From Macrostomum lignano (lineage: Eukaryota): DNA of 64,000 bases. The stretch spans positions 9,731-73,730 of the forward strand of contig NIVC01003852.1 in the NCBI GenBank assembly GCA_002269645.1, given 5' to 3'. Below are positions 23,797-50,400 of the stretch, one piece after another. Made by a program: the position numbers and the translations under genes. The notes below the pieces were generated by a model. That model saw only the letters and a list, made by a program, of their open reading frames with translations, was not told the origin of the DNA and did no database searches. Each line of letters starts with the position of its first letter. The first letter of the stretch is position 1.

Positions 23797-24017
23797 TATG
23801 CATTTATCTATTACTACTTTTGTTAACCTTTATCCTTTTTCTCATATCCCACATATATTTTTGCACAGTTTTCATTTAATCTGTTAATACTAATTGCCTA
23901 ATAATGTCACTTATATAACAAAACATATTGTGATAATTATGATAAAGTTGTTTTTCTTACTACTAATTAATATTAGGCTGTTAGGCATAGCAACCTACCA
24001 AAGCTATACTATGATTG

Positions 24018-26751: not shown

Positions 26752-26921
26752 ATACATGCGCAACCTTGGGAATTACTTAGCCATTTCTATTGGCAAACAC
26801 ACATATAAGTCGCTATTGGCTGAGAGCAGTCATGTGACTACTATTCCGTCTAATAGCAACTTACATTTGTGTTGCCAATAGAAACAGGCCAGGTGAATCC
26901 CTAGGTTGCGCCCAAGCATGT
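26752..26921. mobile_element. About 170-bp hairpin element, copy 2 (inverted relative to copy 1)
   Basis: Reverse complement of 24018-24189; absent from the paralogous site near 62600; ATGTG on both flanks. Confidence 0.75.
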
Positions 26922-27050
26922 ATGTGAACAAACTTTAAAGAAAAAATAACAGAACACATGCATGTGTTTAACTTGTTTAAAAGTAGTTTTAACCAATCGA
27001 TTTTAATTTCCAGATGAGTCAAATATATACACCCAAGACATCTTATAATT

Positions 27051-27696: not shown

Positions 27697-29567
27697 TAAT
27701 TGACTAAATGTTATATATTGTGTATATTAGAATCTCTGATCTAGTTAGCAAATAGCATCTTAAAATTATATTATCAACTTTTTTCTTCATTAATTGTTTG
27801 AATTTTTTGAATTACAATATATGTATATGACTATGAGCTCTTTGTAACGCTTTGTTCAATTTTCTTTGCCTTTAAATTTTTCATAGTTAATATGCAAGTT
27901 CAAATAAAGTATAATATAGTTTAACTAGAAAGTTTAACAATATGTGCAATAAGATATTTGAAATGTTAATTATTAAACTACTTAAAGCTAAACCTAATTA
28001 TCATTAAAAAAGTGTTAAGAGTCGTAAATCTGCTTAGTTACCAAAGTGGCTATTACTGAAGTGTTTTTTTTACTAAAGTGGCTGTTACCAAAGTGGCTAT
28101 TATTGAAGTGGATTATATTTTATTTTAATATTATATATATTATATATGTTAATATATTTTAATATTTTATGCGCCGCAGCGCGCCATGATAAGGTAAGGT
28201 AAGATAAGGTAATTAATAATTCACTGGTAAACAAATTTGAATTTATGGTAGACAAATTTGAATTTCATTTATGTATTTTATATTGTGATTTACGTAATTT
28301 TAGTACTCTGATAGTATAATATTTTATTTTACGAATTATGGAATTAGGCCTGACACGATATATTTTGCAAAGTATAACGAAGTGTAGGGGGCCTAACTAT
28401 ATCAGGTAAAGTGGCTCGCTTGATGAAGAGTAGATAAATAAAGGTAAATATCAACATGAAGTATTATTTGAGTTGCCGATGCATTTCGTCCATTTGCATT
28501 AGGACATCTGAAGACCCGTTCATAGAAAAGACGACAACATCAGCGAAAGCTATTTCGGCGAAAGGAGAGCAGTAAAACTGTATGTTACCTTCCGCGAAAC
28601 GCGCAAAATCATATAGCAAATGATATCTTTACCTAATTTTTTAAGGGTAATTAATTTTAATTACTGTATGTACGTTTTTAATAGCTAGTAGAAATGAAGA
28701 ATAGTTATAATGATTTTAAAATTAAGAAGCCGGAAGTTGTTTTGTGGAACTTCGTGTCTGTGCATGGAACTTGAAGTCTTACGTCTTACATTCTTTTTAA
28801 CCATTTAGTTGTTATAGTAGCGTAGACAGCATAGTTTGCCACTTGTATATAATTTAAAGTTAAACGTTACGTTTAAACACCAAAAATCCCGCAAACGAAA
28901 TTTAAATGTTTGGGTAATTGCAGCATTCACTCGCTAACATTATACTTGCACATTCGAATATTACACTTACACAGTAGACATGCAAGTATAAAGAATAATC
29001 TGTTACAACTTAACATCACTGAAATCATTCTTGCCCATCTCAGCTTAGCCCAGCTAATCAAATAAAATGTGTAGGTGTAATTCAAAAGCTTTTATTATGC
29101 TACAAAATCGATCAATGTATGTATATTATACAGTTTGGCGGAAGGAATAGAGACAAGGACCACTATCCGGAAGTTACCGCTATCCTTGAGTCAAACAACA
29201 GCTCACAGTAGCCAGAGTCAAACCAACGCAGCTCAAGAGTCCCCACGCTGCCAGAGCGCACCCAGGGCCAGGCCATGAGGGTGCGGCAGTTGAAGGTTCC
29301 AGGCTCCATTTAACGAAGCCAAGCGCGGGATCAAACAGTGCACACAAATATCCCCGTTTGAATTCTGGAAAAAAGCAGCCTGTTTCGCACCCTGTTATAC
29401 GCACCTTGCCTTTATACTACGCACCTTGCCTTCATATGGACCCTGCCTTTATACGGACCCTGCCTTTATACGCACTCTGGTTGCTAAATGCCAAATAAAA
29501 GTCAGCAGCTAGGGCGCCCTGGCTGCAAGTGTGAAGCAGCCCCACGTGCCCGCCTCCCGCCGCCGCC

Positions 29568-30852: not shown

Positions 30853-32406
30853 ATGGCACTCCCTGGAGCTCAGCCGCTGGACTTGGCCTTCTCTTTCGAC
30901 ACGACCGGCTCAATGGGCTCCGTCATCAACGAGGTGCGCAGCAACATCGCCGAGATGCTGCAGCGGCTCACTACCGACATCCCGGACCTGAGCGTGGCTC
31001 TCATCGCTCACGGAGACTACGGGGACAAGTACGAGACGGAGATCCGCGACTTCGGCACCTCCACAGCGGACCTGGTGCGGTTCGCCAAGACTGTGCAGGG
31101 CACGTACGGCGGGGACGAGCCCGAGTGCTACGAGCTGGTGCTGCAGCAGGCCCGCACCCGCCTCAGCTGGCGCCCGCACAGCAGCCGCGCTCTGGTGCTG
31201 GTCGGCGACGCCTTCCCGCACGAGGTGGGCAGCGCCAGGAACAAGTACAAGATCGACTGGAAGGCGGAGACCGAGCTGTTGCACCAGCTGGGAGTCACCG
31301 TGTACTGCGTGCAGTGCGGCAGCGGCAGGAACTCGCAGAGCTTCATGGACCACGTCGCCAAGGTTACCGGCGGCCTGCGGCTCCCCCTGGCCGAGTTCCG
31401 GGGCGTTCGCGACTTCCTCATGGCCATCGCCTACCGGGAGGGCGGCACCGACGTCCTTCGCGACGGCTACGAGCGCGAGGTGCGCGCCAGGGACGGCGCC
31501 GCGCTGGCCGGCGACGTGAGCGCCATGCTGGGCCTCGTGCGCCGCTCGTCGGCGGTCACCCTGGCGGCCAGCAGCATCGCCGCCGACCCGTCCGGGGCAG
31601 TCACTGGGACAAAGACTGCGGCGAGGCGAACAAAGACTGCCAAAGCGGTGACCGCCGGAACTTCAGGAAAGGCGAAGAAGCCCGTCAGGAAGCCCGTCAC
31701 GAAGCCCGTCACGAAGCCCGTCACGATGCCCGCCAGGAAGCCCGTCACGAAGCCCGTCACGAAGCCCGTCACGAAGCCCGTCACGAAGCCCGCCAGGAAG
31801 CCCGTCACGAAGTCCGTCACGAAGCCCGTCACGAAGCCCGTCACGAAGTCCGTCATGGCAGCTGCGAGAATTTCGCGGGCGCGGGCTGCCAGGGCGGTCC
31901 GAACTCGCCGGGAGACCTGCTCCGACAGGCGCCTGCCCGCTGGGCTGGCCGCTCTCACCTGGTCTCCCTGGCGCTTGGTCGGTCAGCCCGGAAGCGTGTC
32001 CCGGTTGTCATGGCAACGCTTTGGAAGCGTCTCAGTGCGCAAGTCGCTGTTCAGTCGCGGCGGCGGTGGCGGCCAGCAAGTCGTGGAGCTCGCCGTGCAG
32101 CCGCGCCCCGGCGCCCGGCGCTTCCCGCTGTTCGGCCGCGTCCTCTCCGCCGGCAGCAGCCGACACCGCGGCGGCTTGCCGGTGGTCAGCGTGAAGAGGC
32201 TCCTGGCTGGCCGGCCGGCTGTCCGGGCCCAGCTTGAGCGGGTGCTGCGCCAGGGCATGCGGGTGTTCGCCAGGGTGGCCGACGCTGCTCCCGCGAGCCC
32301 GCGGCCCCGGCTGGCCAAGGCGGCGAGCTACGCGTGGAACAGCGGCCGCTCGGCGAGATGCGGCGGCGTCTTCGTGTCCGTGTCGGAGAGGAGCCTGCGC
32401 GGCTGA
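30853..32406 (+). CDS. Intronless vWA (MIDAS) domain protein with a basic KPVT-repeat linker and a possible degenerate GIY-YIG-like C-terminal domain, 517 aa
   Basis: [14 protein letters not shown] (DxTxS MIDAS), [15 protein letters not shown] and [10 protein letters not shown]. 12-bp coding repeats (KPVT/KPAR) at about 31680-31850. GC3-rich codon usage like neighbouring genes. Confidence 0.85.
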
Positions 32407-33064
32407 GCGCGCGAGCGACTCCTGCCGCTTCGTGATAGTCGTGGACTTTTTTGATAGCTTGAAGTTGATATTTTGACATATCTGTAAATCGATCGCATGC
32501 AATCGTAAGCATACCTGATATAAATAAATAAATATTTCAGATTTAGTTATATAAGGATTAAACGGAATGACAAATGAAAAACTTATTTTGCTTGAAGGCC
32601 AATATTCGTCGCTATGACGTCTCCCTGCCGTCACCGTCCCCCATTTCTTCGAGTCGGAGTTTTGACCAATTGAAATTTTCTCTGTTCGATAATATCAGCC
32701 ACACACAGTGCATGCTACTCAGTAGCAAACATGGGAGACATTCAAATAAAGAAGCTTAGCGCATCAAAACGGTTAATACTGTTGAGCCTTTGTAACAACA
32801 AAAGCCAAGCGTGATGAGCCAACCGCGGCGCATGCAGAGTTGCGGCTGCAGCTCCGCCATTTGCCATGTGGCACTGCAGCGAATCAAGTGCAGATCAGCC
32901 AGTGCAGTGGCTGGCTGGGCGATGATCCACTGGAGACTGAACCGACTGCTATTGCAAATACTGTAACTGCTTTTGCTTGACTTCCATCTAAGCAGTAAAA
33001 TTCTGAGCTTTTGCAACCGTTTGAACAAGGTAAGGACCCTTGTGAAACTTCTGCTTCAGGAGCA

Positions 33065-33925
33065 GTCACGATAGTATTAGATGAGTCCGTTTCAGGCCTC
33101 AATGACGCTCAGCTTCAGGACACAGTCCCGACAGTGTTAGATGAGTCCGCACCGCTCAGCTTCAGGACACAGTCCCGACAGTGTTAGATGAGTCCGCACC
33201 GCTCAGCTTCAGGACACAGTCCCGACAGTGTTAGATGAGTCCGCACCGCTCAGCTTCAGGACACAGTCCCGACAGTGTTAGATGAGTCCGCACCGCTCAG
33301 CTTCAGGACACAGTCCCGACAGTGTTAGATGAGTCCGCACCGCTCAGCTTCAGGACACAGTCCCGACAGTGTTAGATGAGTCCGCACCGCTCAGCTTCAG
33401 GACACAGTCCCGACAGTGTTAGATGAGTCCGCACCGCTCAGCTTCAGGACACAGTCCCGACAGTGTTAAATGAGTCCGCACCGCTCAGCTTCAGGACACA
33501 GTCCCGACAGTGTTAGATGAGTCCGCACCGCTCAGCTTCAGGACACAGTCCCGACAGTGTTAGATGAGTCCGCACTGCTCAGCTTCAGGACACAGTCCCG
33601 ACAGTGTTAGATGAGTCCGCACCGCTCAGCTTCAGGACACAGTCCCGACAGTGTTAGATGAGTCCGCACCGCTCAGCTTCAGGACACAGTCCCGACAGTG
33701 TTAGATGAGTCCGCACCGCTCAGCTTCAGGACACAGTCCCGACAGTGTTAGATGAGTCCGCACCGCTCAGCTTCAGGACACAGTCCCGACAGTGTTAGAT
33801 GAGTCCGCACCGCTCAGCTTCAGGACACAGTCCCGACAGTGTTAGATGAGTCCGCACCGCTCAGCTTCAGGACACAGTCCCGACAGTGTTAGATGAGTCC
33901 GCACCGCTCAGCTTCAGGACACAGT
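33065..33925. repeat. 47-bp minisatellite, about 18 near-identical copies
   Basis: Unit GCTCAGCTTCAGGACACAGTCCCGACAGTGTTAGATGAGTCCGCACC, with no spacers. Confidence 0.96.
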
Positions 33926-34359
33926 CCAGACGGGTGCACAAATTTTTAGCCCATTTATTAACTGCTACCAGACAATGTCACTGCAGTACTGCGAATAAAG
34001 TCAATGGCGTTTGCAGAGGCTCAGGAGATCTGCATTTACTCATAAAATTGACAACTCATCTCGCCGCAGACCGGCAGTGCCAAAAAGCATTAAGTGTCAG
34101 CTCGGATGCAGCGCTCAGGTCAGCCTGCAGGTCTTGATTCGATATGGATTCGGGCCAGACCGCCCCGACAGGCAGCCCACCAGATAATTGGGGGTCTCAG
34201 AGGCTGCGCGAGCCGTTTTGCTTCTCGGTGCCTTTTAGTGCTCTTGCTCGCCGAATCGCTGGATCCCATTTAGGGAATTCCGCGAGCTGCTCAAACAGCA
34301 GGGCTAGATAAACGAGGCACTGCTCCAAAGTAAACTGACTGGCGTTAGCCTCTATGAGT

Positions 34360-34560
34360 ATAACCCCAAACCTCAGTGACCCACCACAGCTTGCAGGAAT
34401 CCCAAACCCCAGTGACCCACCACAGCCTGCAGTAATCCCAAACCTCAGTGACCCACCACAGCCTGTAGTAACCCCAAACCTCAGTGACCCACCACAGCCT
34501 GCAGTAACCCCAAACCTCAGTGACCCACCACAGCCTGCAGTAACCCCAGGCCTCAGTGAC
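34360..34560. repeat. 36-bp minisatellite, about 5 copies
   Basis: Unit TAACCCCAAACCTCAGTGACCCACCACAGCCTGCAG. Confidence 0.9.
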
Positions 34561-35087
34561 CCATCAGTCGCTGTCCCCAGGTCAGGTATAAATACGTGTT
34601 TCAAATGAATCGAAGCAAATTTTATGCAGATGTTTCTTACTGCCCACTTTACCAATGGAAAATGACTGGCAATATCCACAAGCCAGATGGAGCTCATCAG
34701 CTCATTAAGCAGAAAGCTGAGCCCACCTGCAGCAACAGCAGGGCACAGCCTGACAGTCGGGCTGGACTCTGGACTGCACGCAGGAAAACGGGCAACGGCT
34801 CAGCCAGGGCTGAGAGATCAGCAGCAGTAGCGGCATCAGCAGCGGCAGCAGTTGGCAGTTGGGGTAGCAGCTGCCCCCCCCCCTTTGTCTCTGCAGGACT
34901 GGCTGGCCCGCAGCGGTCCGGGACCCCCCCCCTCAGCTGCACCTCTCTAAGTTACCTGGCCCGTTCTGAGCAGCCTGCTGGCCATCAATGATTGATTGCG
35001 CTGAGCTGCTGCTGCTGCAGCGGTGGATGCAGCGGCAGGCCGGAGGGGGTCACGCAATTGAGATCCTCAGCTGTTGAGCCGCTTCCA

Positions 35088-35381
35088 GCCCTCAGATTGA
35101 AATCCCCAGCTGCTCACAGCCCTCAGATTGAAATCCCCAGCTGCTCACAGCCCTCAGATTGAAATCCCCAGCTGCTCACAGCCCTCAGATTGAAATCCCC
35201 AACTGCTCACAGCTCACAGATGGAAATCCCCAACTGCTCACAGCTCACAGATGGAAATCCCCAGCTGCTCACAGCTCACAGATGGAAATCCCCAGCTGCT
35301 CACAGCCCACAGATTGAAATCCCCAGCTGCTCACAGCCCTCAGATTGAAATCCCCAGCTGCTCACAGCCCACAGATTGAAA
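35088..35381. repeat. 31-bp minisatellite just 5' of the claudin-like exon
   Basis: Unit CCCTCAGATTGAAATCCCCAGCTGCTCACAG. Confidence 0.92.
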
Positions 35382-35406
35382 TAATCAACTACCCGGCCGC
35401 TCCCAG

Positions 35407-38400
35407 CCTTCACACTGGACGTTCAGAAGTCTCAAGGTCGGCGCGCCGGCCAGCCGCGGCATCTCGACCTGCTGCTGCCGCCGCAGCCGTTGTCACCGCT
35501 GGCGGCATCGTCGTCAGCAGCAGCGGCGGCGGCGGGCCTGACGCCTGGCGACGAGGCGGCGCCGCCGAGGTCGCCGTTCGCGCCGCCGCCTCCACCGCAG
35601 CCGACGCCGACAGCGGGTCTCCGCGACGAGGTCGGCTGGCTGGAGTGGTCGCGCGACCGGCGGCGCTGCGACACCGAGGCGTCGATCGAGGAGGGGGCGA
35701 TCCCGACGCTGCCGCCGCCGGTGCACAAGAAAAAGCCGGCGGCGCGGAAAAATTCCGGCCGAGGCGGGCGCGGCGGGCGGAAGCGGCGTCGGCACCACAA
35801 GCCGGACGAGCCGGAGCTGACGCTGGCGCAGTGGAGCCGCCTGTTGGCCTTCTGGCAGCACCCGTTCTTCGTCCGCTCCCGCCAGCTGGCGCTGCTGCTG
35901 CTGGCGCTGGCCGTTGTCACCGGCGTCACCAGCCTCAGCAGCCGGTCCTGGGCCTTCTACATGCTGGGTGAGCGGACTGGCAGCTCCGACTCGCTAGGGA
36001 TTTAAATGCGTTCTCTGGTCTGCACTCTGCTGAGCTCATTCCCTAGTAACTGTGGTTGCTGACTGTACTCAACAAATCTTATTTCCAGTCTACTATACAG
36101 TCTATTCCGTTATGCATTCCACAGTCTACTCAACAATCTACTTCTCAATCTACTTCACAGTCTACTGAACAATCTACTCCACAATCTACTCCACAATCTA
36201 CTTCATAATTTACTCAACAATCTACTCCTCAATCTAAATCACAATCTACTCAAGAATCTACTCTGCAATCTACTCTACAATCTACTCCACAATCTACTCC
36301 ACAATCTACTCCACAATCTACTCCACAATCTACTTCTTAATCTACTTCACAGCCTACTCAACAATCTACTCCACCACCAACTTCAGACCGCCTCCCATTC
36401 GCTTTAACTGGCCAGCAGCAGGCCAGCACCGCAACCGGCTCGTGTCGCCCCTTCCTCACCGATTTCTCGGGGGAAATTGTCCCAGCCAGGACCAGTTCCC
36501 ACCCCCACTCGAAGCCATTGTATCTGACGCCACCGAAAAAGGAATTTCAGTGGGCGGTTCGCGGGAAAAATGGATGCAGACTCAGAGTGGCGCCTAATTG
36601 GGGTGGCGGTCCCAGCCTCCGCTCCAGCCGGCAGTTGCACCCAGGATTAATATTCCGCGTATTCTGACACGCTCGCTGACCTCGATTTTGGCCCTAACAA
36701 GGAAAATTTAGCAATTTTTGTTTCCCCTCAAAGAAGTTAAAAATTTTAACGCCCGAAAAACCGAAAACGAGGCGAAGCAGAAACTCGAACAGGGCCAGAG
36801 ACTCAAGTTGTCAGCTGTTGAGGCCACTGGGAGACTCTGCTGCACATTCTGACAGTCAGCAAACTGATGGGTCATGTGGCAAGCTCTCAGAGCTGACAGT
36901 CAGCATACTGATGGGTCATGCGGCAAGCTCTCAGAGCTGACAGTCAGCAAACTGATGGGTCATGCGGCAAGCTCTCAGAGCTGACAGTCAGCAAGCTGAT
37001 GGGTCATGCGGCAAGCTCTCAGAGCTGACAGTCAGCAAACTGATGGGTCATGCGGCAAGCTCTCAGAGCTGACAATCAGCAAACTGATGGGTCATGCGGC
37101 AAGCTCTCAGAGCTGACAGTCAGCAAACTGATGGGTCATGCGGCAAGCTCTCAGAGCTGACAGTCAGCAAACTGATGGGTCATGCGGCAAGCTCTCAGAG
37201 CTGACAGTCAGCAAACTGATGGGTCATGCGGCAAGCTCTCAGAGCTGACAGTCAGCAAGCTGATGGGTCATGCGGCAAGCCCTCAGAGCTGACAGTCAGC
37301 AAGTTGAATGCTAAAGAGCCAGGTTCAACTGTTTAAACCTCAACTATTTAAACCTCAATTCAACAAAAGATTCTGCAGCTGACTACTTATCAGTAGAGTA
37401 GCGAGCAAATTATTTTATTTTAAATTTATGCTTAAGAAAACGCTTGCGCTTGAAAATAGATTTCGTCTGACCCGCAGAAAATTCGACCCAGGTGATGTCC
37501 GGCCTGTGGGACACCTGCTTCCTGGCCAACGGCACGTGCGTGCACAACTTCCAGCTGCACTCGCTCTACATCGATGCTCACGGTGAGGAGGTTGCGCTAA
37601 AAAAACCGAGAGGGCTCAGCTGCCGCCCCTGCCAGTCTGAGGAGCAGAAAACTTCCGCCAGTCAGTCAGGAAAGGCGTTGGGCTTCCCGTTTCTCCCATC
37701 TGCTTGGTGCGCAGCCACCGCCCCTGCCGCCCCCGGCTCAACAGTGCGAGTGCAGGGGGTGACCGGCCTCCAAGCCGCCCGCTCACAGCCCGGCCTGCCT
37801 TCCTGTCTGCACCAGCTAAAAGTTCTCCAGCCTCGCCAGAGCTCCCTTCTAGTGGATTCCCCGGCTGCGAGTTACTGCAGCTCCGCGGCTTCCTGCGGTG
37901 CCGCCTCCTCCGGCCCTTCGGTGGTGAACTGGATTCGCTAAGGACATTAAGACAGGCAGACACAGGCAGACGCTAAGACAGGCAGACACAGGCAGACGCT
38001 AAGACAGGCAGACACAGGCAGACGCTAAGACAGGCAGACACAGGCAGACGCTAATGCAGGCAGACACAGGCAGACACAGGCAGATACAGACAGACGCTAA
38101 GACACAGGCAGACACAGGCAGATACAGACAAACGCTAAGACACAGGAAGACAGGCAGACACAGGCAGACACAGGCAGATACAGACAAACGCTAAGACACA
38201 GGAAGACAGGCAGACACAGGCAGACACAGACAGACACAGGCAGAAACAAGCAGAAACAAGCAGACACAGGCAGACACAGGCAAACACTGGCAGACACAGG
38301 GAGACACAGGCAGACACAGGCAGACACAGGCAGACACAGGCAGACACAGGCAGGCCATGAGACCCGGGGTGCAGGGGAAAGTGCAGCCCGCATCACTTGA

Positions 38401-41400
38401 TCGAGCGCGCAGCCGAGAGGGGTGGCAGCCGCCCAGCAGCTCCCCGCCTCCAGCCGGGCGGCTCGACGGAGTTGGTAGCGCAAGGAGGGCAGAAGTTGGA
38501 AAATGAATGAGGCAGAGAAACTGCGATGGAAAGAAATATGGGCGGATGCGAGGGGACAGAAGTGGGAGGAGAGTTGGGGGGAGGGAGACAGACACCCGGA
38601 CCAGGGAAAACTCAGCAGAGGGGAAACCCGAGACTGGGATTGGGAAGACCGATGAGGATAGGAGCAAGGGTAGCAGTGAGGACCCGCTGCCCAAACCCTG
38701 CCAGCGTCGCGGAGCTGCAGGCCGGCAGGGGGAAGAAAGGGGGATCTCAGCTGGTTTGATCCGGCGGCCGCTTCGATCCGCCTTCTGCTTCTGGCCGACC
38801 GCTTGGCGTTTCCGCCAGCCCGGAATTCGCGAACAGCCGGCCGGGCAGGCGGCCTCCCGCAGGCGCTGGCTGGGCGGAGGGCGGAGGGGGGCAGCGGCTG
38901 CATCGCCAGCTGGCCTCATCCCGTCAACTCATTTATCCCCGCCCACTACCACTGCTGCTGCAGCTGGTGGCCTCGTGCCGCAGTGGTGAATTGAATCAGC
39001 AGCCGCTGGCCTCCAGCCGGCAGATCAGCCGGGGACGCCAGTTCCGGGGAGGCGGGCTGCGAAGGGCGCCACCAGCCTCATCCGGGATCGCGCAGGAATT
39101 ATTTATGCGCCGAGCTGGGGGGGGGGCTCTGGGAGACTGGGGAAATCCGAGACAGAAGGCTCTCCGCCCGAAGAGTAGAGATGAAGAACGGAGAGGCTGG
39201 ATAGGCAAGTGGAGTGCAAAGAAAATGAAACTGAGAGGGGAGCTCTCTAAGGCGGGGCATCAGATTGATGGCGCGCTCTGCTCAGCTGAGGCTGTCGCTT
39301 CCAAAGCGGGCTGCCCCGCCCCAGCTGAGCCGGTGCCAAAATTCCAGCGGGCAGATGCAGCTGCTGGCGGGGCCGCGGCACGCGAGGCAGCGCGCCGCAA
39401 TGGAGGAGGCGCTGGCGGCGGCTGGTCCCCCGGTGACCCGTTGAGCCGCCGTTTGCTTCGCCCTCGCCGGACACCCGGCCAGGCGGGGAATTTGCAGAAC
39501 TGGCCGAGGCAAATGCCGCTGCTGTGAGTGGGAAGTGGGAAGTGATGAAGCATGAGGGACAGGGATGCTGGGCAGCCTGAGTGAGATGGGGCTGGGGCAT
39601 CGGAAGGGGCAGCGGCGGCGGATTAAGGCGCGGGCTCACCTGCAGGCTGTACTTTCTCTCCGCCTTCATTTCTCCCCTGCCGGCCTCGGGAGCTGATCTG
39701 AGCTCGCCGTGGATGCCGCGGCCTCCCCCAGCCTCCTCCGTCTGAGGTGTCGCGGGACTTCGAGGATCCGCGGGGAGGAGCCGTTGCCTCCACACCCTCC
39801 CCCGCCGCGGGAAGAGGCGAAAGCGGAGTCGCGGAGAGTAAGCTGGAAGCTGGAAGCCTCATCTCTGCGGAGGGCGGCAGCGGGTGGCCGCCCAGTGGCT
39901 GGCGGCCGGGCGGCCAACCCGAAGTGGAGGCCCCCCGGGGCTCTCGTGAGGGAAAAGTCGAGACGGGCAGGGCCCAGCTTCCCACAGATTCCCCTTCACT
40001 CTGTCGCGACCCGCTGCCCTCGCCCGAATTTCCCGCGCCGGAGCTCCCGACCGACTTCCGGGCGACTGAAGGCCCCCCGCCATCCAGCGAGTCAACCTGC
40101 AGCGATGTTGTCGACGCTTTCGCTGCCTCTGCCGCCGCCTCCGGTGCCGCCGCTGCCATGAGCGGCCGCCGGCGCAGTCGGCACCCGCCGCCGGATGAAG
40201 TCGCTGAAGAATTTCCTGAGCTTCAAGGTGCCGGACAACAGCGCCTACGAGCAGCGCGTTTACACCGAAGATTTCTGCTTCCAGGAGAAGCGGCGGCTGC
40301 GCTGGCGCTGCAGCGGCGCCGGAGCCTCCGTTCTGGCGCTCATCCTGTACGCCAACATGCTGCACCCGGCCTCCCACTGGACGGCCGGGCCGGCTGGCGG
40401 CGGCGGCGGCGAAGGCAGCGGCCGCGGCTCCGCCTGGTCCAGCCTGTGGGACGCCTGCTTCCTGCTGGCCTTTAACAAAACCGTGCCGCACGAGCTGCAG
40501 CACGTCAGCTGCGAGCACTTCGTGCCAGGTAGCTGCTGGCCCGCCACTGACAGCTGCGCCAGCCAGCCCATACCCGCCAGCCCATACCCGCCAGCCCATA
40601 CCCGCCAGCCCATACCCGCCAGCCCATACCCACCAGCCCATCCCCGCCAGCCCATACCCGCCAGCCCATACCCACCAGCCCATCCCCGCCAGCCCATACC
40701 CGCCAGCCCATACCCGCCAGCCCATACCCGCCAGCCCATACCCGCCAGCCCATACCCGCCAGCTCATACCCGCCAGCTCATACCCGCCAGTTCGTACCCG
40801 CCAGCTCATACCCGCCAGCTCATACCCGCCAGTTCGTACCCGCCAGCTCATACCCGCCAGCTCATACCCGCCAGTTCGTACCCACCAGCTCATACTCGCC
40901 AGCCCAGTGGTCTAGCATGATCATGTGACAGGCCCAGGCTCGATTCCAAGTGCAGTCCTATTAATTCGAAGCTAAATGGGAATCTCGGGTTCGCTCTGCT
41001 CGTGAAATTAACGCCCTTTAGGGCCAACCTTCAAGGCACAGTGAAGTGTACATGCCTAACGATAAATACACTCCTGTGTGAGGGTGTGCCTGTGCGTATG
41101 ACTGCGTACGTATCCGCGCGCTTGTGTGCCTGCTCAGTGGAGTCGGCGGAATGGGCAGCAATGCCTCTCCCCGTTTGTGTGCGACAATGTCGCTTAAAGT
41201 TCACCAGGCTGCACGCAGCCCCTGCCTCTGATAAAAAATACCCTCCGGCTGCTCAAAGTCCCATCGCACCGCTTCGCCCACCTCCAATGGAACCCCGCAG
41301 ACTGGCAGAAAGCGATCATCGGCCTGCTGTTCTTCTCCGTGCTGTTCGCTGCCATTGGCTCCGTGCTGGCCGTCTGCGGCCTCTGTGCCGGCCACCTGCC

Positions 41401-41724
41401 CAGAAAGATGTACTATTATCATTCTGCCGGCGAGATCTTCTTCGTGTCCGGTGAGACTCCGGCTTCTGCAGTGCCTAAACCTGTCACTTGGGGTCTGTCA
41501 CACTGATCTGTCACCCCTAAAAAGTCCAACCAGAAAGCAGCCGTCACGCACAAGAGTTAAAAGAGTCCCGGCTGCCTCAGCCCACCCTGAGCTCCTGAGC
41601 TCCATCCTCAAGCCGCAGCAGTAAAATGGCGGCCTTGAAAATTGAATTATGCAAAAATTTGCATCCACCGAAACACGCGGCCTGCCCGGCTGCTCAAATC
41701 TTAATGGAATAAAGCCAGCCAGCT

Positions 41725-41768
<44 letters not shown>

Positions 41769-43560
41769 GCGGCGACGAAATCCGCGACCCGCGCCCGGAG
41801 TGGCGGACAAAAGCGAGCGGAGACTAACAGGATTACGCCGTGCCTGAGAATGCACTTATCTACTGACTGCCCCCAGTTCCGATGAAGATGATAAAATTCC
41901 CACAAGGACTCAGTAGCCGCCCCACGCCGCTTGTCGAGCTGGGGGAGGGGGAAAGTGCAGCGAGGCTCTGGTGAGGAGAGGAAACGGCCGGGATGGAAGC
42001 GACTCCATGCAACTGCTTCAGTGCAATCGATTTCTTGAGCTGCCCAAAGCTTTGACGCCAAATTGGGGCTTCCATGCCCAGCTGAGAAGTGGGAATGAAC
42101 TTCTGCGGGTGCCCGGGGCGGGACGGAACCGGCCTGCCCTGCCCAACCCCGACTCTGCAACTTCAAAGTGAATTTTAAAGCCAGCTCTGCTAGAAGCAGT
42201 TTGTTTGACTGAAAATTCACTGGGTATTTGTTGCATAGCATGACGAATTAATAACGTAACTTTGGAGTACAATGCATACGTTATCTACTCCAGACACTGT
42301 TGTCCTTGCACCACTTTTTTCGCCAACAAAAGTAACCTCGCTCTGTCAATAATAGCCACCTCACTCCGCCAACAACAGCCACCTCACTCCGCCAGAAACA
42401 GCCACCTCACTCCGCTAGAAACAGCCGCCTCACTCCGCCAACAACAGCCACCTCACTCCGCCAGAAACAGCCACCTCACTCCGCTAGAAACAGCCGCCTC
42501 ACTCCGCCAACAACAGCCACCTCACTTCGCCAGAAACAGCCACCTCACTCCGCCAGAAACAGCCACCTCACTCCGCCAGAAACAGCCACCTCACTCCGCC
42601 AGAAACAGCCACCTCACTCCGCCAACAACAGCCACCTCACTTCGCCAGAAACAGCCACCTCACTCCGCCAACAACAGCCACCTCACTCCGCCAACAACAG
42701 CCACCTCACTCCGCCAACAACAGCCACCTCACTCCGCCAGAAACAGCCACCTCACTCCGCCAACAACAGCCACCTCACTCCGCCAGAAACAGCCACCTCA
42801 CTCCGCTAGAAACTGCCACCTCACTCCGCCAACAACAGCCACCTCACTCCGCCAGAAACAGCCACCTCACTCCGCCAACAACAACCACCTCACTCCGCCA
42901 ACAACAGCCACCTCACTCCGCCAACAACAGCCACCTCACTCCGCCAGAAACAGCCACCGTACTCCGCCAGAAACAGCCACCTCACTCCGCCAACAACAGC
43001 CACCTCACTCCGCCAGAAACAGCCACCTCACTCCGCTAGAAACTGCCACCTCACTCCGCCAACAACAGCCACCTCACTCCGCCAGAAACAGCCACCTCAC
43101 TCCGCCAACAACAGCCACCTCACTCCGCCAACAACAGCCACCTCACTCCGCCAACAACAGCCACCTCACTCCGCCAACAACAGCCACCTTAATCCGCCAA
43201 CAACAACCACTTATAAAAGATAGCAAATCACCAATAAAATACAAGCTGCCTCATTTTCTTTGCTCTATACCTCCCTCATTTTAACAGCCACATCATTCCA
43301 TTTGCCCGTCCGCAGCTGTGGCCACCACCATAGCAGTCGGCGTGTATCCCTACGTTGTGCAGCGCTTTGTCTATCAGTCGGCCAGCTACGGCTACGGCTA
43401 CGGCCTGGGCTGGGTCACGGCCGGCCTGCTGTACCTGGCCTCGCTCAGCATGATGCTGGACGACCTGGTGCGCGAGTCCTCTCGGCCCCGGCCCTGGACG
43501 GTCTTGTGCTGCTTCTGCCCGGCCGTGCACCGTTCCGGCGATCACCCGCAGCCAGTCTGA
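35407..43560 (+). CDS. Claudin/PMP22-superfamily tetraspan protein, isoform A (start exon uncertain)
   Basis: Exons about 35407-35967, 37478-37582, 41301-41450 and 43316-43560, all phase 1. TM1 ([17 protein letters not shown]), then W...GLWDTC...C loop motif, TM2 [14 protein letters not shown]3 [10 protein letters not shown], and TM4 YGYGLGW. Confidence 0.8.
36085..36375. repeat. 12-bp degenerate minisatellite (intronic)
   Basis: Unit CAATCTACTCCA. Confidence 0.88.
36850..37303. repeat. 44-bp minisatellite (intronic)
   Basis: Unit GCTGACAGTCAGCAAACTGATGGGTCATGCGGCAAGCTCTCAGA. Confidence 0.94.
37945..38352. repeat. 10-bp/26-bp minisatellite (intronic)
   Basis: CAGGCAGACA units. Confidence 0.92.
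40195..43560 (+). CDS. Claudin/PMP22-superfamily protein, isoform B from an alternative first coding exon, 242 aa
   Basis: Exon 40195-40528 (ATG, TM1 [15 protein letters not shown]...SLWDAC...C) ends at a phase-1 GT. It joins 41301-41450 and 43316-43560 in frame. Confidence 0.72.
40560..40902. repeat. 14-bp minisatellite (intronic)
   Basis: Unit GCCAGCCCATACCC. Confidence 0.93.
42352..43200. repeat. 23-bp minisatellite (intronic)
   Basis: Unit AACAGCCACCTCACTCCGCC(AAC/AGA). Confidence 0.94.
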
Positions 43561-46194
43561 CTTCCTCGTCGGGGCTCATGTGCCGCTACCACCCTATCAG
43601 CCCGCTGCTGCCACCCGGAGCCGGCCGCCAGCTGGACTTGAAGCCCAAACAAAACACGCAGCGCCAACGCCAGGGTGCTAAATTTGTAGCAGTAAAGTGC
43701 GATGCGCCCGTCGCCCCCAGCTGAGCTTGTTATTCTTTTCTATGTACACAATTGGCACACATGTACACTAGATGTACATTCAGTGTGCGCAGAGCTACGT
43801 GCACTTCACTTAGATTGTCTTTGCGCTCAAAGATGAATGCTAATTAATGTTTGAGCACATTATTTTTGAAAGTATTCGATTCCCCCTCTTATTTGCCCTG
43901 CCCGCCCCAAATGCCATTTGATCGAATTTCCTCTGCAAGCCTCGCCTCTGTACCGAAGTCGGGCACAGGTCCTGTCGCTGTCATGCATATTTTTATACAA
44001 TGCTATTATTTGAGTTCCTTACCACCTGCTTAGCTGCTATTAACGCTATAAACGCAATGATGCGCTGCGGCCCGCACTGCACCTGATGCTATATGAATAA
44101 ACTAATTTTTAAAACTAATTCAATTCATACATTGCCACGTACAAAACTATTTCATGTTCTCGAACACAAGACATCACAGGCACTGTGAAAGCCACACTCA
44201 GCTCTGCAGCCTCCGTCATCATCAATTAATAGACTGCATGGCTGGCCGCACCTGGCGGCGCTCGAGAGCCGAGCAGCAGCAGCCGGAGGGCCCAGCCTCG
44301 AACCCCACGGAAGCCTGGGCGGGCGGAAAGAGGCTGGGATGGAGCTGCTGAATTATTGAGGCAGGCAGCAGTCAGCCAAGCTCTTGGCAACAGATGCTCA
44401 CCCCCCCATCCACCAGGCGTCTCTTGAGAGCGGCTCAGGGGGGGGGGCGCCCCGCTGCGCCAATTCTTACTTTGTGAGGTGCGGGCCCGAGACCGCAGGC
44501 TGATAAGTGACTGCTGGCGGGACCGGGGGCGGCGGCACGGGGCGGGGCTGCCAGGCAGCTCGAATTCTTCGAATAAACTGCGCGCGTCCCCCCGCCGGCT
44601 CTCCCGCGGGATTTTTTTCCCATGCAACTCGAGCCGCTTCTTGCCGCTGCCCGGGCCTCCCCCCCCAGCTGGGCAATGAAATTGAAGCCGCCGCTGCTGC
44701 ATTTTGCATGACACCCGACGGCTGACTCGAAAATCAACCGTCCTCGAACAACTCGCGTAGAGACGCGCAGGGGGGCGCCTCAAGTGCAGACTTGAGCACT
44801 GCGGCTCTGCAACAGGCGGACAGGCCGGCTGGTTGGCCCGGCCATGCAAAACTCGCAGCTGGCCGGGAAAGTGGGAAGCAGAAGCGCATAGAGAGGATGA
44901 TGAAGGAGCTGCCGGAGGAGGCTGGATCGGATGGGGATCGATTTTTTGGCACTGGCGCCGGACTCGCGGGGCTGGCGGGGAATATTGACACGCCGGCCGG
45001 AGTGAAGAGCCCCCTTCCCAGCAGAATAACTGGGCTGGGGAAAATGCTCCCAGTGCTCCCAGCTGCCTACCGCGGCTTCATTAAAGCCGGCAGGCCCGCA
45101 CCAGCCAAGCCGCTGGCCGATCGCACGGGGCCGCATAGGTGAGACCGGGAGGCAGGCATGGCTGAACCAGACAGGGGAGCCGAGGGGCTGGAATCGGGAG
45201 GCCGGGGGAGCGGCTTTCTAATGAACTGCCTGAGCCCGCCCGCGCCAGAGCGCCCGGTCCGTCCCAAATTGGGGAGCTGCAAGGCGCTGCGGGGACACAG
45301 GGGGGGGGGAGACAGTTGAAGAGATCTCCCATGCTTTCTGAGCCCGGCCGAGCGAGGGGCAAATTAGGCGGCCGGGCCTGCGAGCGGAAGATGGACTGCG
45401 GGGCAGCGGGTGGATGCGGGGGATTAGCGAGCCAGCCAGGGGAAAATAGTAGGGATTGAGCAGCAGGGATTATGAGATAAGCGCGGATAAAATGGGTGCC
45501 AAACAGACCGGGGGAAGCCGGGAGGTCAGCAGCAGCCCCGCAGACTCCCAGCCGGGGGGGAAAGAAGGATCTCCCGGGCATCCGCAGCGCTGCAAAAGTG
45601 CACGCCCGGGCTGGGAGATGCAGATGCGTATTTGAGAAGGCCGGGCCGTGCAGAGAGCAGCTGTCAGTCAGTGGAGCAGAGAAGAAGGGAAGGGCGCTGA
45701 GCGCCGGTCAAGGAGAATGAGTGCTCAAACCAGAGCAGTCCAGCGCCTGTTCCGCAACCAGCGATTTATCAACGGCTCTCATGAGTTGATCAATAGTATG
45801 AGAGCCGGGCCTGGGGCTCAATACTCATTTTACCGCAGCCCGGAGCGCTAAAGGTCTCCGTGTGCTTCAAATTCCCTTTGCAAAAAACAAAGTCAGAGAA
45901 CGAGCTGTGTGAGCAGTGAATTAATTTTTCAATTAAAATGTATTGGCTGCAACAAGAAATCCGTAATGTACGATCTGCCTGAGAAAATCTAAAAACAAAA
46001 ATATTTCTTCCATATCTGACGTGACAAAAATTGCACAAGAAGTTGGAGAATCAGGACTAAATGATATAATATAACTTTTGATGGCATTGAAATATTGGGA
46101 CGGCAGTGCCCCCCACCCCCTGCAAAATTATTTGGCAGGCAATTGCCCACACTGTCCCCCACGGCTCCGCTGCGCCTGTGTAGCAGCGAGATCC

Positions 46195-47409: not shown

Positions 47410-50400
47410 TCAGCTGCAGCCTCCCTGCCTGGCGGCCAGCAGCCGCACAGCCTGCAGCAGGTTGGCCTCCCCGGCCAGCAGGTCTTGCAGCCGCTGTCTC
47501 TCCTCGGCGGAGCGGCAGTACACAAGGCAGCGGCCGGCGTCCACCCGGACCCGGCCCCGAGACTGCACCAGCGCGGCCACCCGCGAAGGCGGATCGGCCA
47601 GCACCAGCAGGTCGCAGCGGGGCAGGTCGAGGCCCTCGCAGGCGATGGGCGTGGCAACCAGCGCGTTGGCCTCGCCTCTGGCCACCGAGTACAGCAGGCG
47701 GCGCTGCTGCGCCACCGACATGCCGGCGTCTCCAGCGGCGCCGTGCCCGATCAGGCAGGCCGGGCGGAGGTCGGCGAAGTCAGCAAAGGCCGAGTGAGAG
47801 GCCAGCAGATCGGCGAGGCGGCGCGCAGTGGCGCGTTCGCGCACGATCACCAGCGCCAGTCTGGCACCCCCGGTGCCGCGCAGGTCGTCGGCCAGGGCGC
47901 GCAGCACCGAGCCAGCGCCGGCAGTGGCGGCCTGGCCTTCGCGCAGGAGCTGCAGCGCATCGACAAGCGCCTCCGCGCTCTGGCGCATCTCGGTCAGCAG
48001 CTCCCGCGACAACAGCGACGACAGAGCGGCGTCGTCCAGCTCGGCGACCAACTGGCGGGAGTCCCCGCAGACGGCCAGGCCCAGGGCGCTGCGCAACTGC
48101 GAGGGTAGCGGTATTCACCCACTTATTCACTGCCCCGATTCACCCACTTATTCACTGCCCCGATTCACCCACTTATTCACTGCCCCAATTCACCCACTTT
48201 TTCACTGCCCCGATTCACCCACTTATTCACTGCCCCAATTCACCCACTTATTCACTGCCCCAATTCACCCACTTATTCAATGCCCCAATTCACCCACTTA
48301 TTCACTGCCCCAATTCACCCAATTATTCACTGCCCCAACTCACCCACTTATCACTGCCCAATTCACCCACTTATCACTGCCTAATTCACCCACAATATTT
48401 ACTGCCCAATTCACCCACTTATTCGCTGCCCCAATTCACCCACTTATTCACTCACCTCGCTCAGTCTCCGCAGCTGCTCAACCAGGAGGCGCACCGGTTG
48501 GCTGTCGGCAGTCCGCTCGGCCACCTCGTCCAGCACGCCGGCCAGATTCGGACAGTCGAGCCCGCCATTGCTCAGCAGCTGGTTTACCAGTAGGGCGGCG
48601 TCGGACGCCCCGGATGCTTCGGCAGCCTTCCGCAGGGCGGTGAGCACCAGGGCGGAGTGGTTGATCAGGGCGGCCACCGCGGCCGTCTCCTCCGTCAGCG
48701 GCGGCACGAGTCGGCCAGAGATGCCCGCTCGGACAGAAAACTCGGCTAGCTGAGCCTGGGCGTCCGGCGAGCTCGGCCAGGCCAGTCTAGCGCCGCCCAG
48801 TCTGTCCAGGAGGCCGACCAGCATCTCCTGAGTGGCCGGCAGTGAGGCCTGCGAGGGCGGGCGAATTTTGATAATAAAAGATTTAGATGCCTGCAGGAAA
48901 AATAGTGAGAACTTGCGGAATGCTACTATTAGTAATATAACCTTAGCTTTTGGGTTCGGGTATTGTCACTGACACTGACAGTCAATTGTCACTGACAGTC
49001 AATTGTCACTGACAGTCAATTGTCACTGACAGTCAATTGTCACTGACAGTCAATTGTCAAAGACTGCACCAAGAACAATTCAAACCTGGCCGGCTGGCGA
49101 GGCGGTGAATCCCAGCAAGCGAGGCGACTTCAGCTCCGGCATGCTGAGCACTTGGCCGGCCAGCAGCGAGTACGGGTGCAGGGCGTCGCAGTGGTGCGCC
49201 TCGTCCATGGCCAGCAGGCAGGCCTGGTCCAGGCGCAGCGCCCCGGTGCGCAGGCAGTTGGCGTAGAAAGCGGCGGTGGTCACCACCAGGTCGGCTGCGG
49301 CCAGCGGCTGATCGTCAGGCAGGCTGTGCAGGTCGCCGCAGACCGCAGCCACGGCCAGCGACCGCGTCACCGTCGGGGTTGGCAGGGCTGGCGACGATGG
49401 CGGAGGCAGCGGCCGGAAGAAACGGCGCATGCGAACCTGCGGGAGCAGTGGGGCCCTGTCACTCAGTCACTGGGAAACTGCCCAGCCCTGTCACTCAGTC
49501 ACTGGGAATCTGCCCAGCCCTGTCACTCAGTCACTGGGAATCTGCCCAGCCCTGTCACTCAGTCACTGGGAATCTGCCCAGCCCTGTCACTCAGTCACTG
49601 GGAATCTGCCCAGCCCTGTCACTCAGTCACTGGGAATCTGCCCAGCCCTGTTACTCAGTCACTGGGAATCTGCCCAGCCCTGTCACTCAGTCACTGGGAA
49701 TCTGCCCAGCCCTGTCACTCAGTCACTGGGAATCTGCCCAGCCCTGTCACTCAGTCACTGGGAATCTGCCCAGCCCTGTCACTCAGTCACCAGACATCTG
49801 CTCAGCCCTGTCACTTAGTCAGCAGGAAACCGCCCAGCCCTGTCACTCAGTCAGCAGGAAACCGCCCAGCCCTGTCACTCAGTCCCCAGGAAACCGCCCA
49901 GCCCTGTCACTCAGTCCCCAGGAAACCGCCCAGTTCTCCCAGACCTGAGCCAGCTGAGCCCGCAGGAAGGCGGCCTGCTGCAGCACCAGCAGCACCTTGT
50001 CCACCAGGAACACGGCACTACGGAGCGGATTCGCCTCCAGTGCTGCCAGAATGGCCAGGGCGGCCACCATCGTCTTGCCCGTGCCGGTGGGCAGCACACA
50101 CAGCGCGTTGCCATGGCGACAGCAGAGACGGTACGCCTCCAGCTGGTAAATGCGCGGCCTCAGCTGGGTCGGCCAGTCGGTCCGTGGATTGGCGACGAAC
50201 TCGCACGCTGGCGCCTGTCGGTCCGGCGCCGGACAGCGGACCGCCAGACGGCGCCGATGATCGCGGCCGGCGACGTGAGCCGCCACGTTGTTTCCATGGA
50301 GACGGATGCCGCAAAGGTTGCACAACGAGTAGCCGTCAGGCAGCTGAACAACGGGCTGATAGCTGGCTGCGCGGTGGTACAGGGGTGCGGGCGCAACTGG

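Follow-up and report, generated by a model that had tools for sequence, protein, structure and literature searches.

Can a single flatworm locus build two different tetraspan proteins by exchanging the first part of its coding sequence? This question is raised by a 64-kb stretch of Macrostomum lignano DNA (hereafter, the window), in which a first-pass annotation had seen a claudin-like gene with two N-terminal modules, each bearing a transmembrane (TM) helix and a first-loop signature and each ending at a phase-1 donor that fits one acceptor at 41301. Our analysis bore out the module coordinates and this phase fit, and translation confirmed both modules together with the contrast drawn between their loops, i.e., W-x13-GLW-x2-C-x6-C in cassette A and W-x20-SLW-x2-C-x17-C, with a glycine run, in cassette B. 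All exons lie on the forward strand (exon boundaries are marked here by a slash). Cassette A comprises exon A1 (35407-35967), which encodes a cytoplasmic N-terminal domain (as had been described, proline and basic residues are abundant in it), TM1, and a conserved Trp, and exon A2 (37478-37582; 105 nt), which encodes the first extracellular loop. A1 is bounded by a phase-1 acceptor (ctcccag/) and a phase-1 donor (CTGG/gtgagc), and A2 by cccgcag/ and CACG/gtgagg, again in phase 1 on both sides. Cassette B is the single exon B (40195-40528), which opens with an ATG at 40195 and ends at a phase-1 donor (CCAG/gtagct); it encodes a conserved N-terminus that is short, followed by TM1 and by a first loop that is long and rich in glycine. 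The N-terminus preceding TM1 measures ~165 aa in A and ~40 aa in B. Shared exon S1 (41301-41450; 150 nt, phase 1 at both ends) carries (D)WQKAIIGLL, TM2, and the start of TM3; its acceptor (ccccgcag/ACTGGC) takes the donor of either A2 or B, with an Asp arising at either junction, and its own donor is TCCG/gtgag. Shared exon S2 (43316-43560) encodes the remainder of TM3, the second loop with YGYGYGLGW, TM4, LDDLVRE, and a Cys-rich tail with a C-terminal Val (...HPQPV), followed by a TGA stop at 43558-43560. The A-S1-S2 and B-S1-S2 spliced products are both open frames. Cassette A, cassette B, and the S1/S2 pair each occur once in the window, and no second TM2-TM4 coding region was found on either strand of its whole length.

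Both products belong to the PMP22/EMP/MP20/claudin superfamily, with a predicted claudin fold. More specifically, isoforms A and B scored 47.4 and 40.4 bits against Pfam PF00822 (PMP22_Claudin), above the gathering score of 26.7 bits in both cases, and AlphaFold2 models of the two isoforms (pLDDT of 76.6 and 81.5; pTM of 0.72 and 0.77) predicted four long helices plus extracellular loop strands. Foldseek matched these models to claudin-3, -4, -15, and -19, MP20, and TARP, with target-normalised TM-scores of ~0.7-0.8 suggesting a common fold. A profile search of the PDB returned MP20 (E=9e-9), claudin-15 (E=5e-6), and gamma-7 (E=0.016), and the nearest named entries in a search of 1.8 billion proteins were TMEM47-like and PERP-like (E ~1e-10 to 1e-12, a one-way profile similarity), their source names being "transmembrane protein 47-like" and "p53 apoptosis effector related to PMP-22-like." Within the family itself, source names were "uncharacterized" or a spurious "endoglucanase." The earlier label "claudin-like" thus holds for superfamily and fold, but the nearest named relatives are TMEM47/PERP-like proteins and MP20 rather than pore-forming claudins. 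Identity with the classical tight-junction claudins was considered and rejected, given the long N-termini, the closer match to MP20/TMEM47-like proteins, and the lack of a -YV end: family C-termini are mostly Val, with a few Ile or other residues, and -YV occurred in none of those examined.

Judged from the sequence, the locus is a single gene in which two 5' cassettes, both old and conserved, share one TM2-TM4 half. We consider it likely that the gene extends from 35027 (or 34106) to 43560 and yields two four-helix superfamily proteins. In isoform A (~360 aa), a start exon or a spliced leader, A1, and A2 would be joined to S1 and S2; the protein would have a long N-terminus, cytoplasmic and disordered but with conserved motifs, ahead of a TM1 of its own, and its first loop would be compact. 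Translation of isoform B (242 aa) would begin at the exon B ATG and run on into S1 and S2, with a short N-terminus, likewise conserved, a separate TM1, and a first loop that is long and rich in glycine. Cassettes A and B would be old duplicates, one of which is used per mRNA, and their choice would alter both the outward loop-1 surface and the inward N-terminal domain, while the remainder of the protein (TM2-TM4 with loop 2, and the Cys-rich tail with its terminal Val) would not vary. We infer that cassette use is mutually exclusive in M. lignano, that B probably has a start site of its own, and that the products may act at cell contacts. The cassettes also exchange a conserved cytoplasmic domain, which had not been weighed when the locus was first read in terms of loop selectivity. 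The switch of junction selectivity then proposed finds no support here, the family lying nearest to TMEM47/PERP-like proteins and MP20.

A comparison of orthologous gene structures, suggested in the first-pass annotation, showed that four phyla keep the same order of cassettes. The order A1-A2-B1-B2-S1-S2 recurs in Lingula (locus L007), Tubulanus (L010), and Haliotis (L013), and exon B of Macrostomum corresponds to the B1 and B2 exons of these phyla fused into a single exon. In all three, both cassettes fit the common acceptor in the same phase, S1 measures 150 nt (the match in an M. lignano paralogue likewise spans 150 nt), and the B exons possess an ATG and canonical phase-1 sites and splice to intact proteins of 225-234 aa, even though they are unannotated except for Lingula B2, which is included in a RefSeq model. 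Leave-one-out profiles built on TM1 and loop 1 alone scored the cassette's own type higher in 20 of the 22 cassettes; for the window, own-type versus other-type scores were 46 versus 19 bits for A and 15 versus 7 bits for B, the latter a weak match to the B profile. Since the layout is shared with Lingula (a brachiopod), Tubulanus (a ribbon worm), and Haliotis (an abalone), it is ancient and probably functional, and sequence comparison dates its origin to no later than the ancestor that the four spiralian phyla sampled have in common. In other species, contigs with uninterrupted (intronless) ORFs, which we take to be transcripts, join A directly to the shared exons, B being absent (L004/P0004, and P0030, whose 4,073-nt contig has an ORF of 657 aa), or join B to them without A (L005 and L006/P0002); no single species is represented by both types. 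RefSeq model XP_052285350, from the bivalve Dreissena, runs from an A-type N-terminus into a B exon, a mix implying that both cassettes reside in one gene there too. Dual use is not obligatory, as lineages with single cassettes demonstrate: A-only loci occur in Owenia, Heterobilharzia, and the M. lignano paralogue, and no A cassette was found within 10 kb upstream of B in Octopus or Paralvinella.

The point at which cassette A begins was less readily defined. The A1 frame opens only at 35385, being shut by a stop at 35382-35384, and its sole Met lies in its last codons (FYML). Without an in-frame start ATG, A1 is not a first coding exon, and the start of A must be supplied by a small upstream exon or by an ATG-ending spliced leader. 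One tentative start mini-exon lies at 35027-35048 on the forward strand (ATG CAG CGG CAG GCC GGA GGG G, "MQRQAGG"; compare the N-terminus of the M. lignano paralogue P0164, MQRPTAANGSG...GGGNFTLAAP). Its phase-1 donor (GGGG/gtcacg) is weak, with four of nine consensus positions, and joining it to 35407 creates an open 360-codon frame that begins MQRQAGGAFTLD. The intervening intron of 376 nt would be mostly minisatellite. The second candidate, at 34106-34118 on the same strand ("MQRS," donor CAG/gtcagc, phase 1), has the top donor score (7/9) among the 94 ATG-to-phase-1-GT combinations in 32420-35400. The two candidates, both tentative, cannot be separated on these grounds. In addition, an exon starting at 35427, after the AG at 35426, would preserve the A1 frame, so an ATG-ending spliced leader could also provide the start.

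These uncertainties bear on an unlikely alternative in which the locus makes isoform B alone. In this view the genome has recently undergone polyploidy, cassette A is no longer used or is degenerating, and the A-only paralogue Mlig029213 has taken over its role. A1 lacks an ATG, and the expected N-terminal coding continuation is occupied by a 31-bp minisatellite of 9.6 copies (35086-35382, no strand assigned), which lies directly 5' of A1 and breaks the N-terminal coding region of the cassette. Moreover, no A-type protein from this locus was found in the protein collection, where the search recovered only the B-type model P0001 and the A-only paralogue P0164. An open frame by itself says little in a region so GC-rich that two of the three A1 frames are stop-free. 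A1 nevertheless retains all conserved motifs of its type (W-x2-WS-x2-RR, FWxH-x2-FVRSR, TM1, and the Trp) and scored 54 bits (E=1e-14, among 11,613 ORF pieces) against a profile built solely from other phyla. Likewise, A2 keeps GLW-x2-C-x6-C, canonical cag/.../gtgag sites, the correct phase, and the exact 105-nt length and position of exon A2 in the paralogue (12529-12633 of locus L011), and two phase-correct ATG mini-exons plus an in-frame trans-splice acceptor are on offer to start the frame. We retain the two-product reading.

Exon B is 99% identical to the M. lignano UniRef entry A0A1I8GV57 (P0001), is 51% identical in amino acids to the B exon of another contig (L003), and scored 23.5 bits (E=3e-5, 11,613 ORF pieces) against a B1 profile derived solely from other phyla. 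Like the Pfam scores, the profile hits of A1 and B exceed what chance would give. Immediately upstream lies a GC-rich, repeat-free stretch (38360-40194, forward strand; GC of 0.67, CpG o/e of 0.81), a candidate internal promoter and 5'UTR. Its reading frame differs from that of the P0001 copy by a frame-shifting indel and so is not coding. Within this stretch, the ATG at 40158 is out of frame, and an AG acceptor that would start an exon at 40178 is in frame and in phase 1. A GC-rich island had initially been placed before each module; this stands for B but not for A, where the high GC content (0.73) is that of exon A1 itself and the upstream region (34600-35006) has a GC of 0.57 and a CpG o/e of 0.36.

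How isoform B would be initiated admits a further alternative, in which both isoforms derive from one primary transcript and B is released by an ATG-ending spliced leader trans-spliced just 5' of exon B. Approximately 30% of M. lignano genes are trans-spliced with a leader that ends in ATG (PMC8629364), and given that the first listed exon of A lacks a start codon, alternative trans-splicing could replace alternative promoters. The AG acceptor located 17 nt before the B ATG would also remove the ATG at 40158. However, this acceptor (ggcgcag/) has neither a YTNCAG motif nor a pyrimidine tract, the ATG of the leader would open a 7-codon upstream frame, and 1.8 kb of repeat-free, GC-rich DNA lies 5' of B. 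Furthermore, Lingula, Tubulanus, and Haliotis would need their own B1 start site unless they trans-splice too, which makes a second promoter look the simpler ancestral state. We regard trans-splicing at B as improbable and prefer a separate start site.

Far less plausible is a tandem mRNA (A1-A2-B-S1-S2). Lingula XP_013410926 does place the A2 and B2 loops in tandem, the Dreissena model combines an A N-terminus with a B exon, and the phase-1 acceptor at 40178 would keep the A2-to-B frame open. Yet both RefSeq cases are computed models, into which frame-neutral exons of 99 and 102 nt can be taken up without penalty, the 40178 acceptor is poor, and a product with two TM1 helices would have the membrane orientation of all later segments reversed. 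In P0030 (a Logan-assembled ORF), A2 runs directly to S1; its A-type N-terminus is close to that of Lingula, so it probably comes from a related animal. A split into two genes, the first comprising A1/A2 and a 3' end of its own and the second B-S1-S2 further downstream, is scarcely credible: annotation pipelines did yield single-cassette or mixed models and never two isoforms, but A2 ends in a phase-1 donor rather than a stop, TM1 plus loop 1 by itself is not viable in this fold, neither strand of the window offers a second TM2-TM4 coding region, and the arrangement is kept in four phyla.

On balance, we lean towards a joint reading in which two alternative cassettes have been retained since at least the ancestor of flatworms, molluscs, brachiopods, and nemerteans, so that a single spiralian locus would build two cell-contact tetraspans differing in their outer surface and in a large regulatory cytoplasmic domain. 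Some lineages would later have split the forms into separate or single-form genes (the A-only Macrostomum paralogue, Owenia, and schistosomes, and possibly the B-only octopus and Paralvinella), and public annotations would omit one of the cassettes, or join it wrongly, in each of the dual-cassette species examined. Existing models are B-only (P0001), A-only (Tubulanus, Haliotis, and Lineus), or mixtures of cassette parts (Lingula and Dreissena), and two isoforms are described in none of them; gene models need correction in Lingula, Tubulanus, Haliotis, Dreissena, Paralvinella, and Macrostomum. Conservation of the dual-cassette design in four phyla implies that both forms matter. Little is known of the molecules that form spiralian cell junctions, and no functional annotation exists for the present family; isoform-specific knock-down in Macrostomum offers a clean experimental handle.

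Among known systems, TARP/calcium-channel gamma subunits resemble the predicted models in fold (target-normalised TM-scores of ~0.65-0.79) and in a SAG-I/E-FF-like motif in TM3, but sequence similarity is weak (as seen for gamma-7), the TTPV tail is lacking, and nothing links the family to glutamate receptors. Claudins (the claudin-15, -19, -4, and -3 structures) and septate-junction claudins such as Drosophila Sinuous have the fold and the W-GLW-C-C loop-1 signature in common with it; claudin-family proteins serve invertebrate septate junctions (PMC2172325). Unlike in classical claudins, the N-terminus here is not short and the C-terminus is -x-V instead of -YV. MP20 (LIM2, PDB 9cbv), the best solved-structure match by sequence, also gave the highest target-normalised TM-score with the isoform B model among the matches listed (0.77, rmsd of 3.6 Å), but it is only ~18% identical, has no long N-terminus, and is vertebrate and lens-specific. 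To our knowledge, no alternative first exons have been reported for MP20. TMEM47 (BCMP1; VAB-9 in C. elegans) and PERP-like proteins have in common with the family the (D)WQ at the start of TM2 and the GYGLGW motif in loop 2. TMEM47/PERP tetraspans act at adherens junctions and desmosomes; at ~180-200 aa with short termini, they differ from the present family, which has two N-terminal cassette types, LDDLVRE, and a Cys-rich tail ending in Val. The closest parallel in gene architecture is with CLDN10 (10a/10b) and CLDN18 (18.1/18.2), in which two alternative 5' coding units likewise swap the N-terminus, TM1, and loop 1 onto common exons, giving CLDN10 forms of opposite ion selectivity and lung- and stomach-specific CLDN18 forms (PMC9184838, PMC9153115). 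In contrast to these genes, the Macrostomum family is not orthologous, being nearer to TMEM47/PERP-like proteins and MP20 by sequence, each cassette comprises two exons in most phyla (Macrostomum B is one exon), cassette A adds a cytoplasmic domain of ~160 to >500 aa with conserved motifs, and the arrangement is common to four spiralian phyla. As the likeness is one of mechanism and not of orthology, the independent origin initially proposed is reasonable with respect to vertebrates, but the arrangement is old and not specific to this flatworm. First-exon choice of the CLDN10/CLDN18 kind is known, and this gene would be a further case of it, raising the question of how a single tetraspan scaffold is adjusted at its outer as well as its inner face, as a counterpart to mammalian CLDN10 and CLDN18.

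Re-reading positions 35000-44000 of the window and translating the proposed exons places the gene on the + strand, with two alternative front cassettes ahead of one shared C-terminal half. Cassette A comprises exon A1 (35407-35967), which follows ctcccag/, ends CTGG/gtgagc at a phase-1 donor and encodes a Pro/basic stretch, a hydrophobic helix and a Trp, and exon A2 (37478-37582, 105 nt), which follows cccgcag/ and ends CACG/gtgagg (phase 1 to 1). Cassette B is a single exon (40195-40528) that begins at an ATG, ends CCAG/gtagct in phase 1, and encodes a helix, a Trp, a Gly-rich insert and SLWDAC-x17-C. The shared exons are S1 (41301-41450, 150 nt; acceptor ccccgcag/ACTGGC, phase 1 to 1), carrying TM2 and the start of TM3, and S2 (43316-43560, stop included), carrying the rest of TM3, loop 2, TM4 and the tail. 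The first-pass annotation held that the phase-1 donors of A2 (37582) and B (40528) both fit the S1 acceptor at 41301; splice sites and translation bear this out, and the S1 junction peptide is identical with either donor. Cassette choice swaps the cytoplasmic N-terminus, TM1 and loop 1, and leaves unchanged TM2-TM4, loop 2 (GYGLGW), the LDDLVRE and Cys-rich tail, and the terminal Val. The cassettes have little in common beyond S(G/S)LWD(T/A)CFL, and tblastn with nine relatives, covering both strands of the 64 kb, recovered a single S1/S2 pair and a single copy of each cassette. We dropped the intact A1 reading frame as a sign of selection: at a GC of 0.73, two of the three A1 frames are stop-free.

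Homologues sort into the same two N-terminal types. Type A (i.e., a long N-terminus with W-x2-W(S/G)-x2-RR-x-S, often TPTPVKKARKE, then FWEH-x2-F ahead of TM1) occurs in Lingula, Owenia, Tubulanus, Lineus, Haliotis, Candidula, Saccostrea, schistosomes and Spirometra. Type B, with the N-terminus MKNFLKFKT...RKFGEEYYLREARLWRPFR, occurs in Octopus, Paralvinella, Bugula and many single-exon fragments. We retrieved the loci of relatives and mapped exons on them. Both cassettes precede the shared exons in Lingula (locus L007: A1 10001-11575, A2 57107-57205, B1 67255-67459, B2 79317-79418, S1 80486-80635, S2 82369-82616), Tubulanus (L010: A1 16477-17433, A2 28940-29056, B1 34057-34255, B2 42365-42475, S1 43649-43798, S2 44868-45085) and Haliotis (L013: A1 10001-11029, A2 about 42758-42865, B1 47967-48153, B2 52053-52136, S1 58930-59079, S2 60052-60290). 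Exon B1 lies outside the annotated product in all three; it carries an ATG, its phase-1 splice sites are canonical, and joined to B2, S1 and S2 it encodes an uninterrupted protein (225-234 aa). One profile scan, applied in the same way to six-frame ORF pieces of ten loci, agrees with this mapping, identifying the window, Lingula, Tubulanus and Haliotis as dual-cassette loci, and Owenia, Heterobilharzia and a compact M. lignano paralogue (Mlig029213) as A-only. Octopus (L001) and Paralvinella (L002) have B1-B2-S1-S2 and no A cassette within the 10-kb upstream flank, where a missing and a distant A are indistinguishable because the Lingula A1-A2 intron spans 45 kb. The Octopus name 'isoform X2' hinted at an A-type X1, which we rejected since all cluster members are B-type; for Lineus and Tubulanus, every RefSeq isoform is A-type. 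Contig L003 was set aside as evidence on cassette order: it carries a relative of the B exon (51% aa identity) with a transposon downstream, and no shared exons within 10 kb downstream of that exon.

With leave-one-out profiles of TM1 and loop 1 alone, 20 of 22 cassettes grouped with their own type, including window A (46 bits versus 19 for the other type) and, weakly, window B (15 versus 7). Judged from these comparisons, the two types of cassette, and the order in which they lie, have been conserved between phyla, and the cassette duplication is therefore older than the split of these phyla. Macrostomum has lost the B1/B2 intron and retained the A1/A2 intron. Separately, a set of ~322-aa marine proteins (P0053, P0059 and P0165-P0172; JGI metatranscriptomes, Logan) carries an A-type W-x2-WS-x2-RR N-terminus and a divergent C-terminal half without GYGLGW.

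Short contigs with uninterrupted ORFs were taken as transcripts, because the same genes are split over kilobases in genomes. Cassette A is joined straight to the shared half in contig L004 (protein P0004) and in P0030, a Logan-assembled 657-aa ORF that reads ...VVNR-DWQNAVIG, and cassette B likewise in contigs L005 and L006 (the latter encoding P0002); all come from species other than Macrostomum, and no species is represented by both types. Computed gene models are mutually inconsistent in how they join the cassettes: Lingula XP_013410926 has the A2 and B2 loops in tandem (L007 57107-57205 and 79317-79418; 99 and 102 nt, both frame-neutral), Dreissena XP_052285350 fuses an A-type N-terminus to a B exon, and the Paralvinella model omits exon B2. 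The Lingula and Dreissena mixtures are in all likelihood artefacts, because a tandem product would contain TM1 twice, with its topology inverted. The inconsistent public models involve proteins P0034, P0028, P0005, P0007 and P0006, and the 'endoglucanase' label on Octopus and Plakobranchus proteins has no basis in sequence.

Isoform B matches the M. lignano protein UniRef A0A1I8GV57 (P0001) at 99% identity, from which it differs at two residues and by an upstream indel; the window locus is probably another copy in this polyploid species, or else belongs to a very close relative. The A-only paralogue BOX15_Mlig029213g3 is compact (3.4 kb) and present in two near-identical copies (L011 10001-13411 and L012 10001-13255, GCA_002269645.1). 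Its A2 (105 nt) equals that of the window in length, its S1 match is 150 nt, and only ~285 nt separate A2 from S1, with the B exon absent; it shares 46% aa identity with the window gene, a distance at which synonymous sites are expected to be saturated.

For the dual-cassette gene, a second promoter ahead of B is the simplest reading. The first-pass annotation placed a GC-rich island before each module, which is true of B (1.8 kb ahead of the exon is repeat-free, GC 0.67) and fails for A, where the GC-rich block is exon A1 itself (0.73) and the upstream DNA is ordinary, with a GC of 0.57 and a CpG o/e of 0.36. It is also possible that alternative trans-splicing of one transcript yields both isoforms in Macrostomum: the M. 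lignano spliced leader ends in ATG and is found on about 30% of genes (PMC8629364), and an AG acceptor in phase 1, whose use would start the exon at 40178, lies upstream of exon B. In favor of the second promoter, Lingula, Tubulanus and Haliotis would need a separate B1 start unless trans-splicing operates there too. A short upstream ORF, running from an ATG at 40105 to a TGA whose last base is 40160, overlaps an out-of-frame ATG at 40158, and both lie shortly ahead of the ATG of exon B at 40195; the other M. lignano copy, P0001, lacks a ~34-nt segment ahead of the B start, including this out-of-frame ATG.

The least secure part is the 5' end of isoform A. In A1 the open frame begins only at 35385, directly behind a stop codon (35382-35384), and contains no ATG ahead of the final FYML; a 31-bp minisatellite (35086-35382) lies directly upstream and interrupts the N-terminal reading frame. 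Isoform A could start at either of two + strand mini-exons, 35027-35048 (ATG, MQRQAGG, weak donor GGGG/gtcacg) or 34106-34118 (ATG, MQRS, better donor CAG/gtcagc), or by trans-splicing of the ATG-ending leader to a candidate in-frame acceptor at 35427 (+; ttcag/AAG). The start of the paralogue protein P0164, MQRPTAANGSG...GGGNFTLAAP, resembles MQRQAGG-A-FTLDV, a likeness that would favor a mini-exon and is suggestive only, because 94 ATG-to-phase-1-GT combinations are available upstream of A1. Given these weaknesses, and given that the protein collection searched holds no A-type protein from the window locus, we allow a small chance that this copy makes no use of cassette A.

A long, highly regular minisatellite is present in each intron and in the region upstream of the gene (33106-33931, 34361-34563, 35086-35382, 36118-36374, 36849-37302, 37948-38353, 40562-40906, 41713-41768 and 42321-43210; unit length 4-47 bp, as many as 39 copies, 72-99% matches). 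The same strand also carries an intronless 517-aa ORF (30853-32406, +) that stops 2.6 kb short of the candidate A start; it begins with a von Willebrand factor A domain at the N-terminus (26.9 bits), and a peptide repeated in tandem, KPVTKPVT..., lies within it (about 31690-31850). Elsewhere lie a zf-met/C2H2 zinc-finger protein (50964-52709, -; 100 bits), an ORF with a thiamine-pyrophosphate enzyme N-terminal domain (20755-22053, -; 105 bits) and a Cys-loop receptor transmembrane region (7992-9032, +; 29.7 bits). Composition is strongly patchy, with AT-rich blocks at 22000-29000 and 61000-64000 (GC 0.24-0.37 versus 0.55-0.69 elsewhere).

Both isoforms match Pfam PMP22_Claudin (47.4 bits for A and 40.4 for B; gathering score 26.7 bits). 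AlphaFold2 predicts four long helices and extracellular strands for isoform B and for a 218-aa isoform A core modelled without the hypothetical MQRQAGGA start (pLDDT 76.6 and 81.5, pTM 0.72 and 0.77, respectively), and Foldseek matched both models to claudin-3, -4, -15 and -19, MP20 and TARPs (target-normalised TM-scores ~0.7-0.8). A family-profile search of the PDB placed MP20/LIM2 closest (E=9e-9), ahead of claudin-15 (5e-6), whereas a single-sequence PDB search gave no meaningful match. A TARP/gamma-like identity was rejected, as sequence similarity is weak (gamma-7, E=0.016). In a library of 1.8 billion proteins, the named proteins closest to the family were 'transmembrane protein 47-like' and 'PERP-like'; TMEM47-like RefSeq isoforms vary in length (Lineus cluster P0111, 263/203/195 aa; Paramacrobiotus cluster P0108, 231/206 aa). 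The label 'claudin-like' is therefore correct at the superfamily level. By analogy with the superfamily, the protein would be a cell-contact or membrane-organising tetraspan, with loop 1 as its likely main outward interaction surface; the cassette A domain is long, basic and probably disordered, with motifs that may be phosphorylatable. Ion-selectivity switching, as first proposed, is one possibility among others and not the favored one, because the sequence is closer to TMEM47/PERP/MP20.

The literature searched on Macrostomum claudins, lophotrochozoan septate-junction claudins and invertebrate claudin alternative first exons yielded no description of this family. Classical claudins have a short N-terminus and a -YV C-terminus; the window protein has neither. 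The mechanism itself is already known from CLDN10 and CLDN18; new here are (i) an uncharacterised family, (ii) two-exon cassettes, (iii) a cytoplasmic domain that is swapped along, (iv) conservation across four phyla, and (v) repeated mis-annotation.
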